This document shows positions 1 to 45,263 of a stretch of DNA of 64,000 nucleotides, one piece after another. Location of the stretch: the NCBI GenBank assembly GCA_051530055.1, contig CM121341.1, forward strand, positions 1,550,001 to 1,614,000. Direction: 5' to 3'. The translations under genes and the position numbers were made by a program. Numbering within the stretch: the first letter of the stretch is position 1; every line of letters starts with the position of its first letter. The stretch is from Neoechinorhynchus agilis. Taxonomy: Eukaryota > Animalia > Acanthocephala. The notes beneath the pieces are model-generated. The model did no database searches and was not told the DNA's origin. It saw only the letters and a list, made by a program, of their open reading frames with translations.

Positions 1-3000
1 CAACAGATATTAAGATGCTGAATTCGATAAAGCGCATTTTGAGACGTTGCTGAAATGAGCGTTTTGACTAATGTTGACATGGAAGAAATCGGCAAATGAA
101 AAGTTGTATAAAGACACGCGTTTTTCTCATAAAAGTGTTCGAAAACAACATTGTCAATACGCCATCAGGAGAAAATCCGTTTGGTGATTGAGTTTCCGCT
201 GTTGTGATAATAATCCAGATTAGAATTTCTTTATTGAATCGAGGCATTTCAATAAAAAAATTTCAATCCTGGATTATGATCGCAACATCTCTGAATTCCC
301 ACAGAATTCAAAAGAAATTAAGATGCTGAATTCGAAAATACGCATCAAGTGACGTTGCTGAAATGGGCGTTTTGACTAATGTTGACATGGAAGAAATCGA
401 CAAATGAAAAGTTGTATAAAGACACGCGTTTTTCTCATAAAAGTGTTCGAAAACAACATTGTCAATATGCCATCAGGAGAAAATCCGTCTGGATGATTGA
501 GTTTTCGCTGATGTGATAATAATCCAGATTAGAATTTCTTTATTGAATCGAGGTATTTCAATAAAAAAATTTCAATCCTGGATTATGATCGCAACATCTC
601 TGAATTCCCACAGAATTCAAAAGAAATTAAGATGCTGAATTCGATAATGCGCATTTAGTGACGTTGCTGAAATGGGCGTTTTGACTAATGTTGACATGGA
701 AACAATCGACAAATGAAAAGTTCTATAAAGACACGCGTTTTTCTCATAAAAGTGTTCGAAAACAACATTGTCAATACGCCATGAGGAGAAAATCCGTTTG
801 GGTGATTGAGTTTTCGCTGTGGTGATAATAATCCAGATTAGAATTTCTTTATTGAATCGAGGTATTTCAATAAAAAAATTTCAATCCTGGATTATGATCG
901 CAACATCTCTGAATTCCCACAGAATTCAAAAGAAATTAAGATGCTGAATTCGAAAATACGCATCAAGTGACGTTGCTGAAATGGGCGTTTTGACTAATGT
1001 TGACATGGAAACAATCGACAAATGAAAAGTTCTATAAAGACACGCGTTTTTCTCATAAAAGTGTTCGAAAACAACATTGTCAATACGCCATCAGGAGAAA
1101 ATCCGTCTGGATGATTGAGTTTTCGCTGTTGTGATAATAATCCAGATTAGAATTTCTTTATTGAATCGAGGTATTTCAATAAAAAAAATTCAATCCTGGA
1201 TTATGATCGCAACATCTCTGAATTCCCACAGAATTCAAAAGAAATTAAGATGCTGAATTCGATAAAGCGCATTTAGTGACGTTGCTGAAATGGGCGTTTT
1301 GACTAATGTTGACATGGAAACAATCGACAAATGAAAAGTTCTATAAAGATACCCGTTTTTCTCATAAAAGTGTTCGAAAATAAGATTGTCAATAAGCCAT
1401 CAGGAGAAAATCCGTCTGGATAATTGAGTTTTCGCTGTTGTGATAATAATCCAGATTAGAATTTCTTTATTGAATCGAGGTATTTCAATAAAAAAAATTT
1501 CAATCCTGGATTATGATCGCAACATCTCTGAATTCCCACAGAATTGAAAAGAAATTAAGATGCTGAATTCGATAATGCGCATTTAGTGACGTTGCTGAAA
1601 TGGGCGTTTTGACTAATGTTGACATGGAAACAATCGACAAATGAAAAGTTCTATAAAGACACGCGTTTTTCTCATAAAAGTGTTCGAAAACAACATTGTC
1701 AATACGCCATCAGGAGAAAATCCGTTTGGGTGATTGAGTTTCCGCTGTTGTGATAATAATCTAGATTAGAATTTCATTGAATCGAGGTATTTCAATAAAA
1801 AAATTTCAATCCTGGATTATGATCGCAACATCTCTGAATTCCCACAGAATTCAAAAGAAATTAAGGTGCTGAATTCGAAAATACGCATCAAGTGACGTTG
1901 CTGAAATGGGCGTTTTGACTAATGTTGACATGTAAGAAATCGACAAATGAAAAGTTGTATAAAGACACGCGTTTTTCTCTTAAAAGTGTTCGAAAACAAC
2001 CTTGTCAACGAGTCATCAGGAGAAAATCCGTCTTGATGATTGAGTTTTCGCTGCGGTGATAATAATCCAGATTAGAATTTCTTTATTGAATCGAGGTATT
2101 TCAATAAAAGAAATTTCGATCCTGGATTATGATTGCAACATCCGCGAATTCCCACAGAATTTAAAAGAAATTAAGATGCTGAATTCGATAAAGCGCATTT
2201 TGTGACGTTGCTGAAATGGGCGTTTTGACTAATGTTGACATGGAAACAATCGACAAATGAAAAGTTCTATAAAGATACCCGTTTTTCTCATAAAAGTGTT
2301 CGAAAATAAGATTGTCAATAAGCCATCAGGAGAAAATCCGTCTGGATAATTGAGTTTTCGCTGTTGTGATAATAATCCAGATTAGAATTTCTTTATTGAA
2401 TCGAGGTATTTCAATAAAAAAAATTTCAATCCTGGATTATGATCGCAACATCTTTGAATTCCCACAGAATTGAAAAGTAATTAAGATGCTGAATTCGATA
2501 ATGCGCATTTAGTGACGTTGCTGAAATGGGCGTTTTGACTAATGTTGACATGGAAACAATCGACAAATGAAAAGTTCTATAAAGACACGCGTTTTTCTCA
2601 TAAAAGTGTTCGAAAACAACATTGTCAATACGCCATCAGGAGAAAATCCGTTTGGGTGATTGAGTTTCCGCTGTTGTGATAATAATCTAGATTAGAATTT
2701 CTTTATTGAATCGAGGTATTTCAATAAAAAAATTTCAATCCTGGATTATGATCGCAACATCTCTGAATTCCCACAGAATTCAAAAGAAATTATGATGCTG
2801 AATTCGAAAATACGCATCAAGTGACGTTGCTGAAATGGGCATTTTGACTAATGTTGACATGGAAGAAATCGACAAATGAAAAGTTCTATAAAGACAAGCG
2901 TTTTTCTCATAAAAGTGTTCGAAAACAACATTGTCAATACGCCATGAGGAGAAAATCCGTTTGGGTGATTGAGTTTTCGCTGCGGTGATAATAATCCAGA

Positions 3001-4582
3001 TTAGAATTTCTTTATTGAATCGAGGTATTTCAATAAAAAAATTTCAATCCTGGATTATGATCGCAACATCTCTGAATTCCCACAGAATTCAAAAGAAATT
3101 AAGATGCTGAATTCGATAAAGCGCATTTTGTGACGTTGCTGAAATGGGCGTTTTGACTAATGTTGACATGGAAGAAATCGACAAATGAAAAGTATAAAGA
3201 CACGCGTTTTTCTCATAAAAGTGTTCGAAAACAACATTGTCAATAAGCAGTCATCAGGAGAAAATCCGTTTGGGTGATTGAGTTTTCGCTGCGGTGATAA
3301 TAATCCAGATTAGAATTTCTTTATTGAATCGAGGTATTTAAATAAAAAAATTTCAATCCTGGATTATGATTGCAACATCCGCGAATTCCCACAGAATTTA
3401 AAAGAAATTAAAATGCTGAATTCGAAAATACGCATCAAGTGACGTTGCTGAAATGAGCGTTTTGACTAATGTTGACATGGAAACAATCGACAAATGAAAA
3501 GATCTATAAAGACACGCGTTTTTCTCATAAAAGTTTTCGAAAACAACCTTGTCAACGAGTCATCAGGATAAAATCCGTCTTGATGATTGAGTTTGCGATG
3601 TGGGGATAATAAACCAAAATAGAATTTCTTTATTGAATCGAGGTATTTCAATAAAAAAATTTCAATCCTGGATTATGATCGCAACATCTTTGAATTCCCA
3701 CAGAATTGAAAAGAAATTAAAATGCTGAATTCGAAAATACGCATCAAGTGACGTTGCTGAAATGAGCGTTTTGACTAATGTTGACATGGAAACAATCGAC
3801 AAATGAAAAGTTGTATAAAGACACGCGTTTTTCTCATAAAAGTTTTCGAAAATAACATTGCCAATAAGCCATCAGGAGAAAATCCGTTTGGGTGATTGAG
3901 TTTCCGCTGTTGTGATAATAATCCAGATTAGAATTTCTTTATTGAATCGAGGTATTTCAATAAAAAAAATTTCAATCCTGGATTATGATCGCAACATCTC
4001 TGAATTCCCACAGAATTCAAAAGAAATTAAGATGCTGAATTCGATAAAGCGCATTTTGTGACGTTGCTGAAATGGGCCTTCTTACTAATGTTGACATGGA
4101 AGAAATCGACAAATGAAAAGTATAAAGACACGCGTTTTTCTCATAAAAGTGTTTCAAAACAACATTGTCAATAAGCCATCAGGCGAAAATCCGTCTTGAT
4201 AATTGAGTTTGTGATGTGGTTATAATAATCCAGATTAGAATTTCTTTATTGAATCGAGGCATTTCAATAAAAGAAATTTCAATCCTGGATTATGATCGCA
4301 ACATCTCTGAATTCCAACAGAGTTCAAAAGATATTAAGATGCTGAATTCGATAAAGCGCATTTTGTGACGTTGCTGAAATGGGCCTTCTTACCAATGTTG
4401 ACATGGAAGAAATCGACAAATGAAAAGTTGTATAAAGACACGCGTTTTTCTCTTAAAAGTGTTCGAAAACAACCTTGTCAACGAGTCATCAGGAGAAAAT
4501 CCGTCTGGATAATTGAGTTTTCGATGTGGTGATAATAATCCAGATTAGAATTTCCTTATTAAATCGAGGTATTTCAATAAAA

Positions 4583-4717
4583 TGTCATATATCATTGTCC
4601 TCGGGGTGTGACAAACTTGCGAAACAATATCGACTGAAGAGGCAAGGAAAACCTTGTGAAATATTTCGAATATAAATGAGTAACGAAAGCACCGGGGGCA
4701 GGATTCGCCAACGCACA
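4583..4717 (+). mobile_element. 135-bp non-coding insertion in the satellite, flanked by a 12-bp target-site duplication and carrying a hammerhead ribozyme (retrozyme/PLE-derived-like)
   Basis: atttcaataaaa occurs at 4571-4582 and 4718-4729, whereas the normal unit has it once at this position. The insert is unrelated to the monomer. Confidence 0.85.
4627..4673 (+). ncRNA. Minimal type I hammerhead ribozyme
   Basis: Stem I ATATCGA(4627-33)/TCGA[A]TAT(4666-73); core CTGAAGA 4634-40 plus one extra G; stem II GCAAGG-AAAA-CCTTGT; GAAA 4658-61; then TA-T-T (AUU triplet, predicted cut after 4665). Confidence 0.8.
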
Positions 4718-7046
4718 ATTTCAATAAAAGATATTTCAATCCTGGATTATGATCGCAACATCTCTGAATTCCAACAGAATTCAAAAGAAATTAAGATGCT
4801 GAATTCGATAATGCGCATTTAGTGACGTTGCTGAAATGGGCGTTTTGACTAATGTTGACATGGAAACAATCGACAAATGAAAAGTTCTATAAAGACACGC
4901 GTTTTTCTCATAAAAGTGTTCGAAAACAACATTGTCAATACGCCATCAGGAGAAAATCCGTTTGGGTGATTGAGTTTCCGCTGTTGTGATAATAATCTAG
5001 ATTAGAATTTCTTTATTGAATCGAGGTATTTCAATAAAAAAATTCAATCCTGGATTATGATCGCAACATCTCTGAATTCCCACAGAATTCAAAAGAAATT
5101 AAGATGCTGAATTCGAAAAAACGCATCAAGTGGCGTTGCTTAAATGGGCGTTTTGACTAATGTTGACATGGAATAAATCCACAAATGAAAAGTTTTATAA
5201 AGACACGCGTTTTTCTCATAAGTGTTCGAAAACAGCATTGTCAATACGCCATCAGGAGAAAATCCGTTTGGGTGATTGAGTTTCCGCTGTTGTGATAATA
5301 ATCTAGATTAGAATTTCTTTATTGAATCGAGGTATTTCAATAAAAAAATTTCAATCCTGGATTATGATCGCAACCTCTCTGAATTCCCACAGAATTCAAA
5401 AGAAATTAAGATGCTGAATTCGAAAAAACGCATCAAGTGGCGTTGCTTAAATGGGCGTTTTGACTAATGTTGACATGGAAACAATCGACAAATGAAAAGT
5501 TCTATAAAGACACGCGTTTTTCTCATAAAAGTTTTCGAAAATAACATTGTCAATAAGCCATCAGAAGAAAATCCGTTTGGGTGATTGAGTTTGCGCTGTT
5601 GTGATAATAATCCAGATTAGAATTTCTTTATTGAATCGAGGTATTTCAATAAAAAAATTCAATCCTGGATTATGATCGCAACATCTCTGAATTCCCACAG
5701 AGTTCAAAAGATATTAAGATGCTGAATTCGAAAATAAGCATTTAGTGACGTTGCTGAAATGGGCGTTTTGACTAATGTTGACATGGAATAAATCGACAAA
5801 TGAAAAGTTTTATAAAGACACGCGTTTTTCTCATAAAAGTTTTCGAAAATAACATTGTCAATAAGCCATCAGGAGAAAATCCGTTTGGGTGATTGAGTTT
5901 GCGCTGGTGTTATAATAATCCAGATTAGAATTTCTTTATTGAATCGAGGTATTTCAATAAAAAAATTCAATCCTGGATTATGATCGCAACATCTCTGAAT
6001 TCCCACAGAATTCAAAAGAAATTAAAATGCTGAATTCGAAAATAAGCATTTAGTGACGTTGCTGAAATGGGCGTTTTGACTAATGTTGACATGGAATAAA
6101 TCGACAAATGAAAAGTTTTATAAAGACACGCGTTTTTCTCTTAAAAGTGTTCGAAAACAACCTGGTCAACGTGTCATCAGGAGAAAATCCGTTTGGGTGA
6201 TTGAGTTTGCGCTGTTGTGATAATAATCCAGATTAGAATTTCTTTATTGAATCGAGGCATTTCAATAAAAGAAATTTCAATCCTGGATTATGATCGCAAC
6301 ACCTCTGAATTCCAACAGAGTTCAAAAGAAATTAAGATGCTGAATTCGAAAATAAGCATTTTGAGACGTTGCTGAAATGAGCGTTTTGACTAATGTTGAC
6401 ATGGAAGAAATCGGCAAATGAAAAGTTGTATAAAGACACGCGTTTTTCTCATAAAAGTGTTCGAAAACAACATTGTCAATACGCCATCAGGATAAAATCC
6501 GTCTTGATGATTGAGTTTTCGCTGCGGTGATAATAATCGAATTAGAATTTCTTTATTGAATCGAGGCATTTCAATAAAGAAATTTCAATCCTGGATTATG
6601 ATTGCAACACCTCTGAATTCCAACAGGTTCAAAAGATATTAAGATGCTGAATTCGATAAAGCGCATTTTGAGACGTTGCTGAAATGAGCGTTTTGACTAA
6701 TGTTGACATGGAATAAATCGACAAATGAAAAGTTTTATAAAAACACGCGTTTTTCTCATAAAAGTGTTCGAAAACAACATTGTCAATAAGCCATCAGGAT
6801 AAAATCCGTCTTGATGATTGAGTTTGCGATGTGGGGATAATAAACCAAAATAGAATTTCTTTATTGAATCGAGGTATTTCAATAAAAAAATTTCAATCCT
6901 GGATTATGATTAATACATGTTGAAGGTTCACCCAGCCATTAAAAGAAAGTGTCGTCACGTGACAATTTCGATACGCGAAAGAAAGTCTGTTTATAAAAAT
7001 GAGTTACACGTGACGCTCTGAGGTTTGTTTATGCGAATGTTTTGAA

Positions 7047-44123: not shown

Positions 44124-44162
44124 GGACTAATATTTCGGAGATTTACTTCTTCTTCAGTGTCC
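44124..44162 (-). ncRNA. Minimal hammerhead-like motif with two mismatches
   Basis: Minus strand: GGACA-CTGAAGA-A-GAAG TAAAT CTCC-GAAA-TA-T-T-AGTCC. Confidence 0.6.
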
Positions 44163-45221: not shown

Positions 45222-45263
45222 TTGTCAGTATTTCGTCCGTCTCGTCGGACTTCTTCAGGTCAA
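45222..45263 (-). ncRNA. Hammerhead-like motif at the end of a PLE GIY-YIG frame
   Basis: TTGAC-CTGAAGA-A-GTCCG ACGAGA CGGAC-GAAA-TA-C-T-GACAA: perfect 5-bp stem II; U16.1 and one stem I base substituted. Confidence 0.7.

Follow-up and report, generated by a model that had tools for sequence, protein, structure and literature searches.

A 135-bp stretch inserted into a satellite array of the 64,000-nucleotide DNA stretch analysed here (the window) is very probably a small, truncated insertion product of a Penelope-like element (PLE), two-armed (inverted plus direct), made from a template that held only the pseudo-LTR (pLTR) and carrying a minimal hammerhead ribozyme motif (min-HHR). The insert cleanly illustrates an architecture that has already been published, and we do not regard it as a new kind of mobile element. 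Its derivation from a retroelement and its non-coding nature are both supported. An earlier sequence-only reading of the window had regarded the insert as a discrete mini-element; this view was not supported, because no second copy has this structure, the first 26 nt are antisense and the inner junctions of related insertions vary, and we therefore favour a two-armed product of the PLE machinery.

The insertion target and the target-site duplication (TSD) are located as follows:
1–6910, no strand assigned: 309-bp satellite array, the insertion target, delimited by TRF, with an imperfect inverted repeat in each unit.
4571–4582, no strand assigned: left TSD copy, ATTTCAATAAAA, seen in the sequence and at the joint 4570→4718 in reads, where 12 letters fit either side.
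4718–4729, no strand assigned: right TSD copy, 12 bp, from the sequence and the TSD comparison.

Direct reading of the window sequence revealed that one 309-bp satellite unit is split by 135 bp at 4583–4717 and that exact copies of the 12-mer flank the insert on both sides, bearing out the insertion and its duplication as first described. TRF delimited the satellite arrays at 1–4582 and 4718–6910. The 12-mer is present once in each uninterrupted neighbour unit of the array, and the TSD is exactly 12 bp, with no further extension possible at either end. In the raw WGS reads, uninterrupted units show the joint 4570→4718, at which 12 letters are compatible with both sides. The satellite and the PLE arm are both multi-copy and prone to mis-joins, and no contig among those listed from an independent DNA run spans the whole stretch; a repeat fragment misplaced within the satellite during assembly is nevertheless hardly credible as the source of the insert. 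Raw WGS reads cover the unique, insert-specific linker (4612–4623) at a depth of approximately 92, and approximately 57 and 37 reads hold positions 4580 and 4720, respectively, in their interior, which are indirectly taken to be junction-spanning reads; in addition, a perfect 12-bp target duplication would not be expected from a mis-join. None of the assembled RNA contigs covers the linker. The proposed landing in an arm of the monomer's own hairpin was roughly right, the actual position of the target 12-mer being the border between the loop and the inner 3′ arm of the satellite inverted repeat. The satellite units are hairpin-like, and all of them give spurious matches to miRNA models.

Within the duplication, the insert consists of the following parts:
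4583–4608, minus strand: inverted arm of 26 nt, the reverse complement of the PLE 'tail' (ORF nucleotides approximately +51 to +76).
4583–4608, minus strand: inverted-arm end at reverse transcriptase (RT) start site 2 (...AUGACA), with a fixed outer end; the PLE ORF reads through the tail.
4609–4612, no strand assigned: inner-junction bases TGAC, either filler or specific to a subfamily; the junctions of the window, L004 and L037 differ in the alignment.
4613–4717, plus strand: direct arm, a sense pLTR/ORF-start segment terminating at RT start site 1 (...GCCAACGCACA).
4676–4717, plus strand: what is left of the beginning of the PLE ORF (the ATG and 13 further codons), closely preceded by an in-frame TAA, from comparison with the L032 ORF.

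Comparison with the autonomous PLE revealed that 4583–4608 is the reverse complement of 26 nt located 8 nt past the insert's own right end, and many copies carry insert positions 1–26 on the minus strand, 8 bp after position 135. A total of 1,047 reads join 4608 to 4719 on opposite strands. The sense segment 4613–4717 comes from a non-coding lineage of the PLE family, with insert positions 31–135 matching C1:2199663–2199766 at 99%. At 4613–4626 the insert reads ACTTGC[G]AAACAAT, as in the non-coding pLTR-only lineage, where the autonomous PLE has CCTCCATTTTAG instead. The insert is young, since bases 45–135 are 100% identical to many copies, some of which adjoin intact 826-aa RT/endonuclease (EN) frames. 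The recent mobilisation and the intact 12-bp TSD proposed earlier were both supported.

[quoted passage not shown] Pfam analysis of the PLE ORF recovered RVT_1 at 4e-12 together with GIY-YIG; two 826-aa frames are free of stops, and RT homologues number 500 at E ≤ 1e-10. The ORF of the L032 copy (3705–5942) starts within the arm. The junction between the pLTR and the ORF start contains the hammerhead, an ATG 11 nt past the predicted cut (the same distance as for the remnant ATG in the insert), and two insertion end points. These end points lie 34 nt apart, at ...CGCACA (site 1, ORF +42) and ...AUGACA (site 2, ORF +76). No master copy of the pLTR-only lineage whose arms are identical to those of the PLE was found, which counts against the preferred explanation.

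Analysis of the wider family indicated a common layout, in which an arm in minus orientation and an arm in plus orientation are followed by 8 bp and a 26-bp tail that is found at one end only. Almost all insertions whose ends were inspected also carry an inverted arm and an inner junction that varies. The one-sided tail measures 34 bp, 11 of the 13 insertions examined end at site 1 on one side and at site 2 on the other, and the contiguous 45-mer spanning site 1 and the tail occurs 83 times, compared with 0 in the control. TSD lengths were 12, 13–14, 12, 18, 13, 9–12, 11–12 and 9–12 bp (overall range, 9–18 bp), and a clear TSD was lacking in three of the 13 (L006, L010 and L030). Members of the family often fold back perfectly on long inverted arms and have the ends TGT...ACA, as might a transposase-mobilised MITE or foldback DNA transposon in which the hammerhead-like motif is coincidental. 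Such an origin is nonetheless extremely improbable: the TSD length is variable, the ends are asymmetric with the 34-bp tail on one side, the long copies code for RT and GIY-YIG with no transposase, and the motif is both covarying and 66-fold enriched over the control.

Besides the window insert, two further mini-insertions, L004 (156 bp) and L037 (141 bp), share its outer ends and differ in their inner junctions, and the TSDs of all three start with ATT. Their similar size and build, together with the intact TSD, the hammerhead motif, the missing coding capacity and the related pLTR-only tandem arrays in the genome, would fit a self-contained 135-bp non-autonomous mini-retrozyme that is transcribed, self-cleaved as a dimer, perhaps circularised, and copied back as a unit. 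We consider this origin improbable. A genome copy search with the full insert, 4583–4717, found the window itself as the sole match at 100%, so the discrete element of the sequence-only reading has no second copy of the same structure; L004 and L037 are 83% alike to the window insert, with other inner junctions. Moreover, the insert opens with 26 nt of PLE coding sequence in antisense, an arrangement that would not be expected in a ribozyme-cut, unit-length RNA, and the ends fall at the PLE RT start sites, away from the ribozyme cut. As a lone monomer, the insert also offers its palindromic helix III no partner and cannot form the dimeric hammerhead that such motifs presumably need, and the hammerhead of the solitary window copy is most likely inert.

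For the favoured two-armed PLE product, we propose a mechanism after Frangieh et al. 2024. The PLE protein would cut both strands of the AT-rich target approximately 12 bp apart, and the two 3′ ends would prime reverse transcription of a non-coding, retrozyme-like pLTR-only RNA, each from one of its two internal start sites. One cDNA would be extended by just 26 nt and the other by approximately 105–109 nt, and joining of the cDNAs would yield 4583–4717 within the 12-bp duplication, with the hammerhead brought in by the template. In transcripts that are multimeric or of the form pLTR-ORF-pLTR, a hammerhead dimer would release RNA of unit length by cutting shortly before the ATG; the RNA ends expected from such a cut on the arm or the 118-bp arrays would start with UCGAAUAU... 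or UCUCAAAU... and end with ...GAAAUAUU. We infer the possible involvement of two cDNAs by analogy with in vitro work on a lizard PLE, and the scar would look the same had only one cDNA been made and jumped between templates.

The ribozyme motif lies in the direct arm:
4627–4673, plus strand: minimal type I hammerhead motif, from the sequence, MFE fold, descriptor, covariation and features given in PMC4209133.

Helix I (4630–4633/4666–4669) comprises 4 contiguous bp and is followed by the core CUGAAGA (C4634–A4640) and an unpaired G4641. Helix II (4642–4647/4652–4657) has 6 bp, a G.U closing pair and an AAAA loop. It is followed by GAA (4658–4660), the loopless palindromic helix III AUAU (4661–4664) and U4665 at H17. 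The conserved hammerhead core, C3-U4-G5-A6-N7-G8-A9 with G12-A13-A14, A15.1-U16.1 and an H17 other than G, is present as CUGAAGA, GAA, A4661...U4664 and U4665, and the RNA MFE fold of 4620–4682 is exactly helix I plus helix II. Cleavage is predicted between 4665 and 4666. The sequence-only reading had described an almost complete hammerhead, and its CUGAAGA, 6-bp stem II, GAAA and AUAU plus U all stand; its 7-bp stem I forms through 4627–4629/4671–4673 only with A4670 bulged and is otherwise 4 bp, and the outer 3 bp are not conserved. An alternative with a closed helix III (AUAUU-UCG-AAUAU, cut after A4674) was rejected, as helix I would be lost and the subfamilies do not conserve it. The Rfam hammerhead models (Hammerhead_1, HH9 and HH10), suggested earlier as a check, gave no match at gathering threshold or at E ≤ 10, either in 4400–4900 or in the whole window. 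We judged this result uninformative and due to the absent helix III loop, because the models likewise miss the window's other PLE hammerheads.

A descriptor of the min-HHR found 1,710 motifs in the genome versus 26 in the reversed control, all 1,710 having GAAAUAU in common, and the exact family of the window's hammerhead has 308 copies. Across 21 families, 95% of helix II cells are paired, with two-sided changes in all six pairs, and the helix II covariation score was 0.845, compared with 0.218 in shuffled alignments (reached in 0 of 500) and at most 0.245 when the helix was slid. Contiguous pairing in helix II averaged 4.4 bp versus 0.55 bp after shuffling. At least 5 bp of helix II form in 26 of 44 inserts, and the unpaired 5′ base is G or A in every one of these 26. 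The inner three pairs of helix I covary between families. Helix I also shows a compensatory U-A to G-C change between subfamilies, and its third pair is a C.U mismatch in the tandem subfamily that is most common. The hammerhead core is invariant in the 21 families, and core sites vary by 1.4–2% versus 5–7% in the flanks (55 monomers). The sequences of alignment A2 were chosen by core-motif pattern and family, a selection that favours intact motifs. Judged on its sequence, the motif is the published PLE min-HHR, beyond chance, and ribozyme activity is predicted for it; the earlier assignment to the minimal type I hammerheads known from Penelope-like elements is borne out feature by feature.

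The same pLTR occurs in tandem with a spacing of approximately 87–118 bp, and the genome holds many such arrays. Two of them, L036 (118 bp × 8.8) and L043, show PLE features at their borders: ends at site 1 and at site 2 (the 'tail' end), an inverted block and an 11–14-bp TSD. The arrays may be true non-LTR retrozymes, the smallest yet, copied as multimers by the co-resident PLE RT/EN at two start sites, with the window insert as a one-monomer product; we hold this only tentatively and lean slightly against it. If true, the proposed mobilisation of animal retrozymes by PLEs would gain direct structural evidence from an invertebrate. The insert itself changes little; as a PLE insertion scar of textbook clarity, it can serve as an annotated example. 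The main value lies in the surrounding family, in a small genome (46 Mb analysed) with approximately 1,700 minimal hammerheads, intact RT/EN frames and pLTR-only arrays with PLE ends. This genome is a compact system for testing the purpose of PLE hammerheads and the mobilisation of retrozymes by PLEs.

PLE insertions are known to consist of an inverted 5′-truncated copy and a 30–40-bp tail at one end only (PMC8557442, Craig et al. 2021), the tail corresponding to the sequence that separates two internal sites of RT initiation, and both DNA strands are cut and extended, with a preference for ATT targets (PMC11167929, Frangieh et al. 2024). The family described here resembles these insertions (Evgen'ev & Arkhipova 2005; PMC8557442; PMC11167929) in its partner with RT and C-terminal GIY-YIG, the hammerhead in the pLTR, the inverted arm, the one-sided 34-bp tail, the two fixed end points in the 5′ part of the ORF, the variable TSD and the AT-rich target starting with ATT. 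The window insert differs in being extremely short (26 + ~109 nt) and in being templated by a non-coding pLTR-only lineage, and its family has end points at ORF +42 and +76, compared with approximately +111–118 in the Anolis PLE. The papers searched made no mention of Acanthocephala, the host phylum. Twin priming of L1 likewise involves two cDNAs from both strands of a staggered break, an inverted plus a direct segment and one TSD, but it uses a different enzyme family and has one poly(A) end and one internal annealing site, whereas both outer ends here are internal RT start sites.

In published min-HHRs, helix I is short, helix II is long and preceded on its 5′ side by an unpaired nucleotide, and helix III is a small palindrome; the motifs occur in pairs on opposite strands, 100–700 bp apart (PMC4209133, Cervera & de la Pena 2014). 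The window motif shares with them the type I topology, the CUGANGA...GAAA core, the 4-bp helix I, the tiny palindromic helix III (AUAU) implying a dimer, and the scatter of single and opposite-strand paired copies through the genome. It differs in the closing pair of helix II, which is G.U in the window's subfamily and G-C in its relatives, and the predicted cut precedes the ATG of the ORF by 11 nt, in contrast to the Anolis PLE, in which the cut falls 26 nt inside the ORF. Compared with non-LTR retrozymes (Cervera & de la Pena 2020, PMC7229834; Li et al. 2026 preprint, 10.64898/2026.07.22.740005), the window insert is a single monomer with no array, the spacings of approximately 87–118 bp fall below the published monomers of approximately 170–400 nt, and the arrays bear a PLE signature of ends, tail and TSD that is unreported in these two sources. 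The likeness lies in the relatives of the insert, which form head-to-tail, non-coding arrays of type I hammerheads with a monomer homologous to the pLTR of a co-resident PLE.

Two copies of the 12-mer ATTTCAATAAAA, at positions 4571-4582 and 4718-4729 of the window (G000:C1:1550001-1614000), enclose 135 unrelated bases, and the 309-bp satellite is broken precisely at the insert (arrays 1-4582 and 4718-6910, TRF). The 12-mer is single in each intact satellite unit, and the duplication is 12 bp, with no further base gained left or right, bearing out the target-site duplication (TSD) proposed in the sequence-only reading. In the raw WGS reads, the insert-specific linker 4612-4623 is covered to a depth of ~92, and positions 4580 and 4720 are interior to about 57 and 37 reads, which we took, indirectly, as junction-spanning; the insertion is therefore present in the DNA and not merely in the assembly. 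The reads also contain the joint 4570->4718 from uninterrupted units, with 12 letters compatible with both sides. The RNA-like runs X1 and X2 likewise yielded contigs with uninterrupted units (window 4480-4582 and 4733-4820), indicating either that the satellite is transcribed or that these runs contain DNA. Sub-threshold matches to precursor models of plant and animal miRNAs (mir-1422, MIR7504, and MIR9746) at every satellite unit (window 199-6303) are hairpin look-alikes from the satellite inverted repeat and no evidence for miRNA genes.

The genome search for further copies was positive for relatives only: at least 80 related matches were found, while 100% identity over bases 1-135 was seen nowhere but in the window itself. 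Mapping the insert pieces onto 37 fetched loci revealed a recurring layout of a minus-orientation arm (insert bases 45-135) and a plus-orientation arm; only one of the two is extended, by the 8 bp ATCAAATT followed by a tail that is insert bases 1-26 in reverse complement. Between the arms of long copies is an ORF with YVDD and GIY...YIG motifs, matching RVT_1 (4e-12) and GIY-YIG in Pfam, with uninterrupted 826-aa frames in two copies and 500 RT homologues at E ≤ 1e-10. The long copies are a canonical Penelope-like element (PLE) of the endonuclease-bearing type. The PLE ORF opens within the arm, at an ATG that corresponds to window 4676 and is closely preceded by an in-frame TAA, and it continues straight through the 8 bp and tail, so that arm, 8 bp, and tail form one contiguous PLE stretch. 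The insert therefore consists of the following parts:

Insert bases 1-26, antisense arm: antisense to PLE ORF nucleotides about +51 to +76; the ORF reads through the tail
Inner junction: four bases, TGAC, between the antisense and sense parts, possibly filler or subfamily-specific
Sense arm: about 105 nt, ending ...GCCAACGCACA

The sense part 5' of the hammerhead is AAACTTGCGAAACAAT, as in the non-coding relatives L002 (99% identical to the insert over bases 31-135) and L003-L012, whereas the autonomous PLE has CCTCCATTTTAG at this place. The sequences suggest that the template was a non-autonomous lineage consisting of the pseudo-LTR (pLTR) only. Locus L032 (G000:C2:12244000-12253999) is a cluster of nested and inverted autonomous copies, in which an inverted copy has inserted at the tail sequence of a 745-aa frame and truncates that frame within GIY-YIG; homing of the endonuclease to the pLTR/tail region would predict such a target.

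Of the 13 insertions whose ends were compared, 11 have site 1 (...CGCACA) at one outer end and site 2 (...AUGACA), 34 nt on, at the other. The inner junction is not fixed. Three mini-insertions (window, 135 bp; L004, 156 bp; L037, 141 bp) share outer ends and differ in their inner joins, and their TSDs all start with ATT. The foldbacks L009, L010, and L002 have about 90-105 nt in each arm, and long copies carry 1-2 kb. TSD lengths across insertions are 12, 13-14, 12, 18, 13, 9-12, 11-12, and 9-12 bp. In published PLE insertions, a 5'-truncated copy lies inverted and a tail of 30-40 bp occurs at a single end (Craig et al. 2021, PMC8557442); this tail spans the distance between two internal sites at which reverse transcription starts, and cutting and extension involve both strands of the target, ATT being preferred (Frangieh et al. 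2024, PMC11167929). The insert family agrees with this signature in end points, tail, and inverted copy, and the three mini-insertions agree with it in their ATT-starting TSDs. A staggered break of roughly 12 bp would have let each strand give one cDNA; the cDNAs would have started at sites 2 and 1 and been joined at lengths of 26 and about 105-109 nt. The TSDs vary in length, the ends are asymmetric, and the partner encodes RT/EN, which excludes a MITE or foldback DNA transposon.

Every hammerhead part named in the sequence-only reading was found, with one adjustment: of the claimed 7-bp stem I, four pairs are contiguous (4630-4633/4666-4669), while the other three require a bulged A4670. Helix I and the 6-bp helix II make up the whole of the minimum-free-energy RNA structure of 4620-4682. 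No Rfam hammerhead model matched the insert region or the whole window even at E ≤ 10. The window contains two other minimal hammerhead motifs, which belong to different PLE families:

Window 44130-44157, minus strand: CUGAAGA-A-...-GAAAUAU/C; degenerate, lacking helix I and having only 1 contiguous pair in helix II
Window about 45226-45256, minus strand: CUGAAGA-A-...-GAAAUAU/C; clean 5-bp helix II

Since these are likewise without Rfam match, the blank result reflects the missing helix III loop. The minimal hammerheads of PLEs (min-HHR) combine a short helix I with a long helix II that has an unpaired nucleotide on its 5' side; their helix III, tiny and palindromic, implies a dimer, and lone as well as opposite-strand paired copies are scattered in the genome (Cervera & de la Pena 2014, PMC4209133). 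The predicted hammerhead of the insert agrees in every feature. The insert is a PLE insertion carrying a PLE minimal hammerhead, and a new element class is rejected.

The descriptor CTGANGA-N14-24-GAAATAT gave 826 + 884 matches in the genome (1,710) against 12 + 14 (26) in the reversed control. The matches represent at least ten families, whose helix II sequences differ yet pair, with 4.4 contiguous pairs on average against 0.55 after shuffling (44 distinct inserts, one unpaired nucleotide after A9). In an alignment of 21 families, selected by core pattern and family and thus favouring intact motifs, 84.5% of cells are paired (helix II, 95%), both-sided changes occur in 6/6 helix II pairs, and covariation scores 0.845, whereas shuffling gives 0.218 (0/500) and sliding 0.245 at most. 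For the motif of the insert's own family there are 308 occurrences in the genome and none in the control. Helix I shows a compensatory U-A to G-C change between subfamilies, but the third pair of this helix is mismatched (C.U) in the most frequent tandem subfamily. Variation across 55 monomers is 1.4-2% at core and helix II sites and 5-7% in the flanks. A PLE protein search gave 1,584 candidates at first look, and both PLEs and their hammerheads seem to be highly abundant in the 46 Mb of N. agilis sequence analysed; no mention of either was found in a genome-reduction paper using this species (PMC12256650).

Cleavage by such hammerheads is reported as weak or protein-assisted (Cervera & de la Pena 2014, PMC4209133; Frangieh et al. 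2024, PMC11167929), and insertion in vitro is independent of it (Frangieh et al. 2024, PMC11167929). An uncut 3'UTR-hammerhead-arm-tail stretch is present in the RNA-like runs, as assembled contigs in which RNA ends are not visible. The predicted cut (4665/4666) lies 10 nt 5' of the PLE ORF ATG (4676; L032:3705), and an in-frame TAA directly precedes this ATG; RNA cleaved there would therefore begin with a 10-nt, 5'-OH leader ahead of the start codon.

The insert is not a retrozyme in the strict sense, because it holds a single monomer. The same pLTR also forms many head-to-tail arrays, most on contig C3, with spacings of about 118, 109, 107, and 87 bp and variants of 225 and 281 bp that contain the tail:

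G000:C3:6693525-6694531: spacing about 87 bp
G000:C2:4455760-4456494: spacing about 87-107 bp
G000:C3:3410155-3410834: spacing about 281 bp
G000:C3:3846408-3846902: spacing about 225 bp
G000:C3:5708645-5709941 (L036:2645-3941): nine inverted monomers, two direct, tail; ~14-bp TSD with one mismatch
G000:C3:5741613-5742623 (L043:1485-2495): inverted tail, about nine monomers, one direct, site 1 end; 11-12-bp TSD

The 109-118-bp monomer arrays L036 and L043 are bounded as single insertions, each having a site 1 end, a tail end at site 2, an inverted block, and a TSD of 11-14 bp. This appearance suggests insertion of multimers through the PLE machinery; alternatively, the arrays may have grown once inserted. 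Animal retrozymes have been proposed to be PLE-moved pLTR derivatives (Cervera & de la Pena 2020, PMC7229834; Li et al. 2026 preprint, 10.64898/2026.07.22.740005), and the arrays fit this proposal. The shortest spacings are well under the 170-400 nt published for animal retrozymes, and these arrays, if retrozymes, would push the size range below 170 nt.
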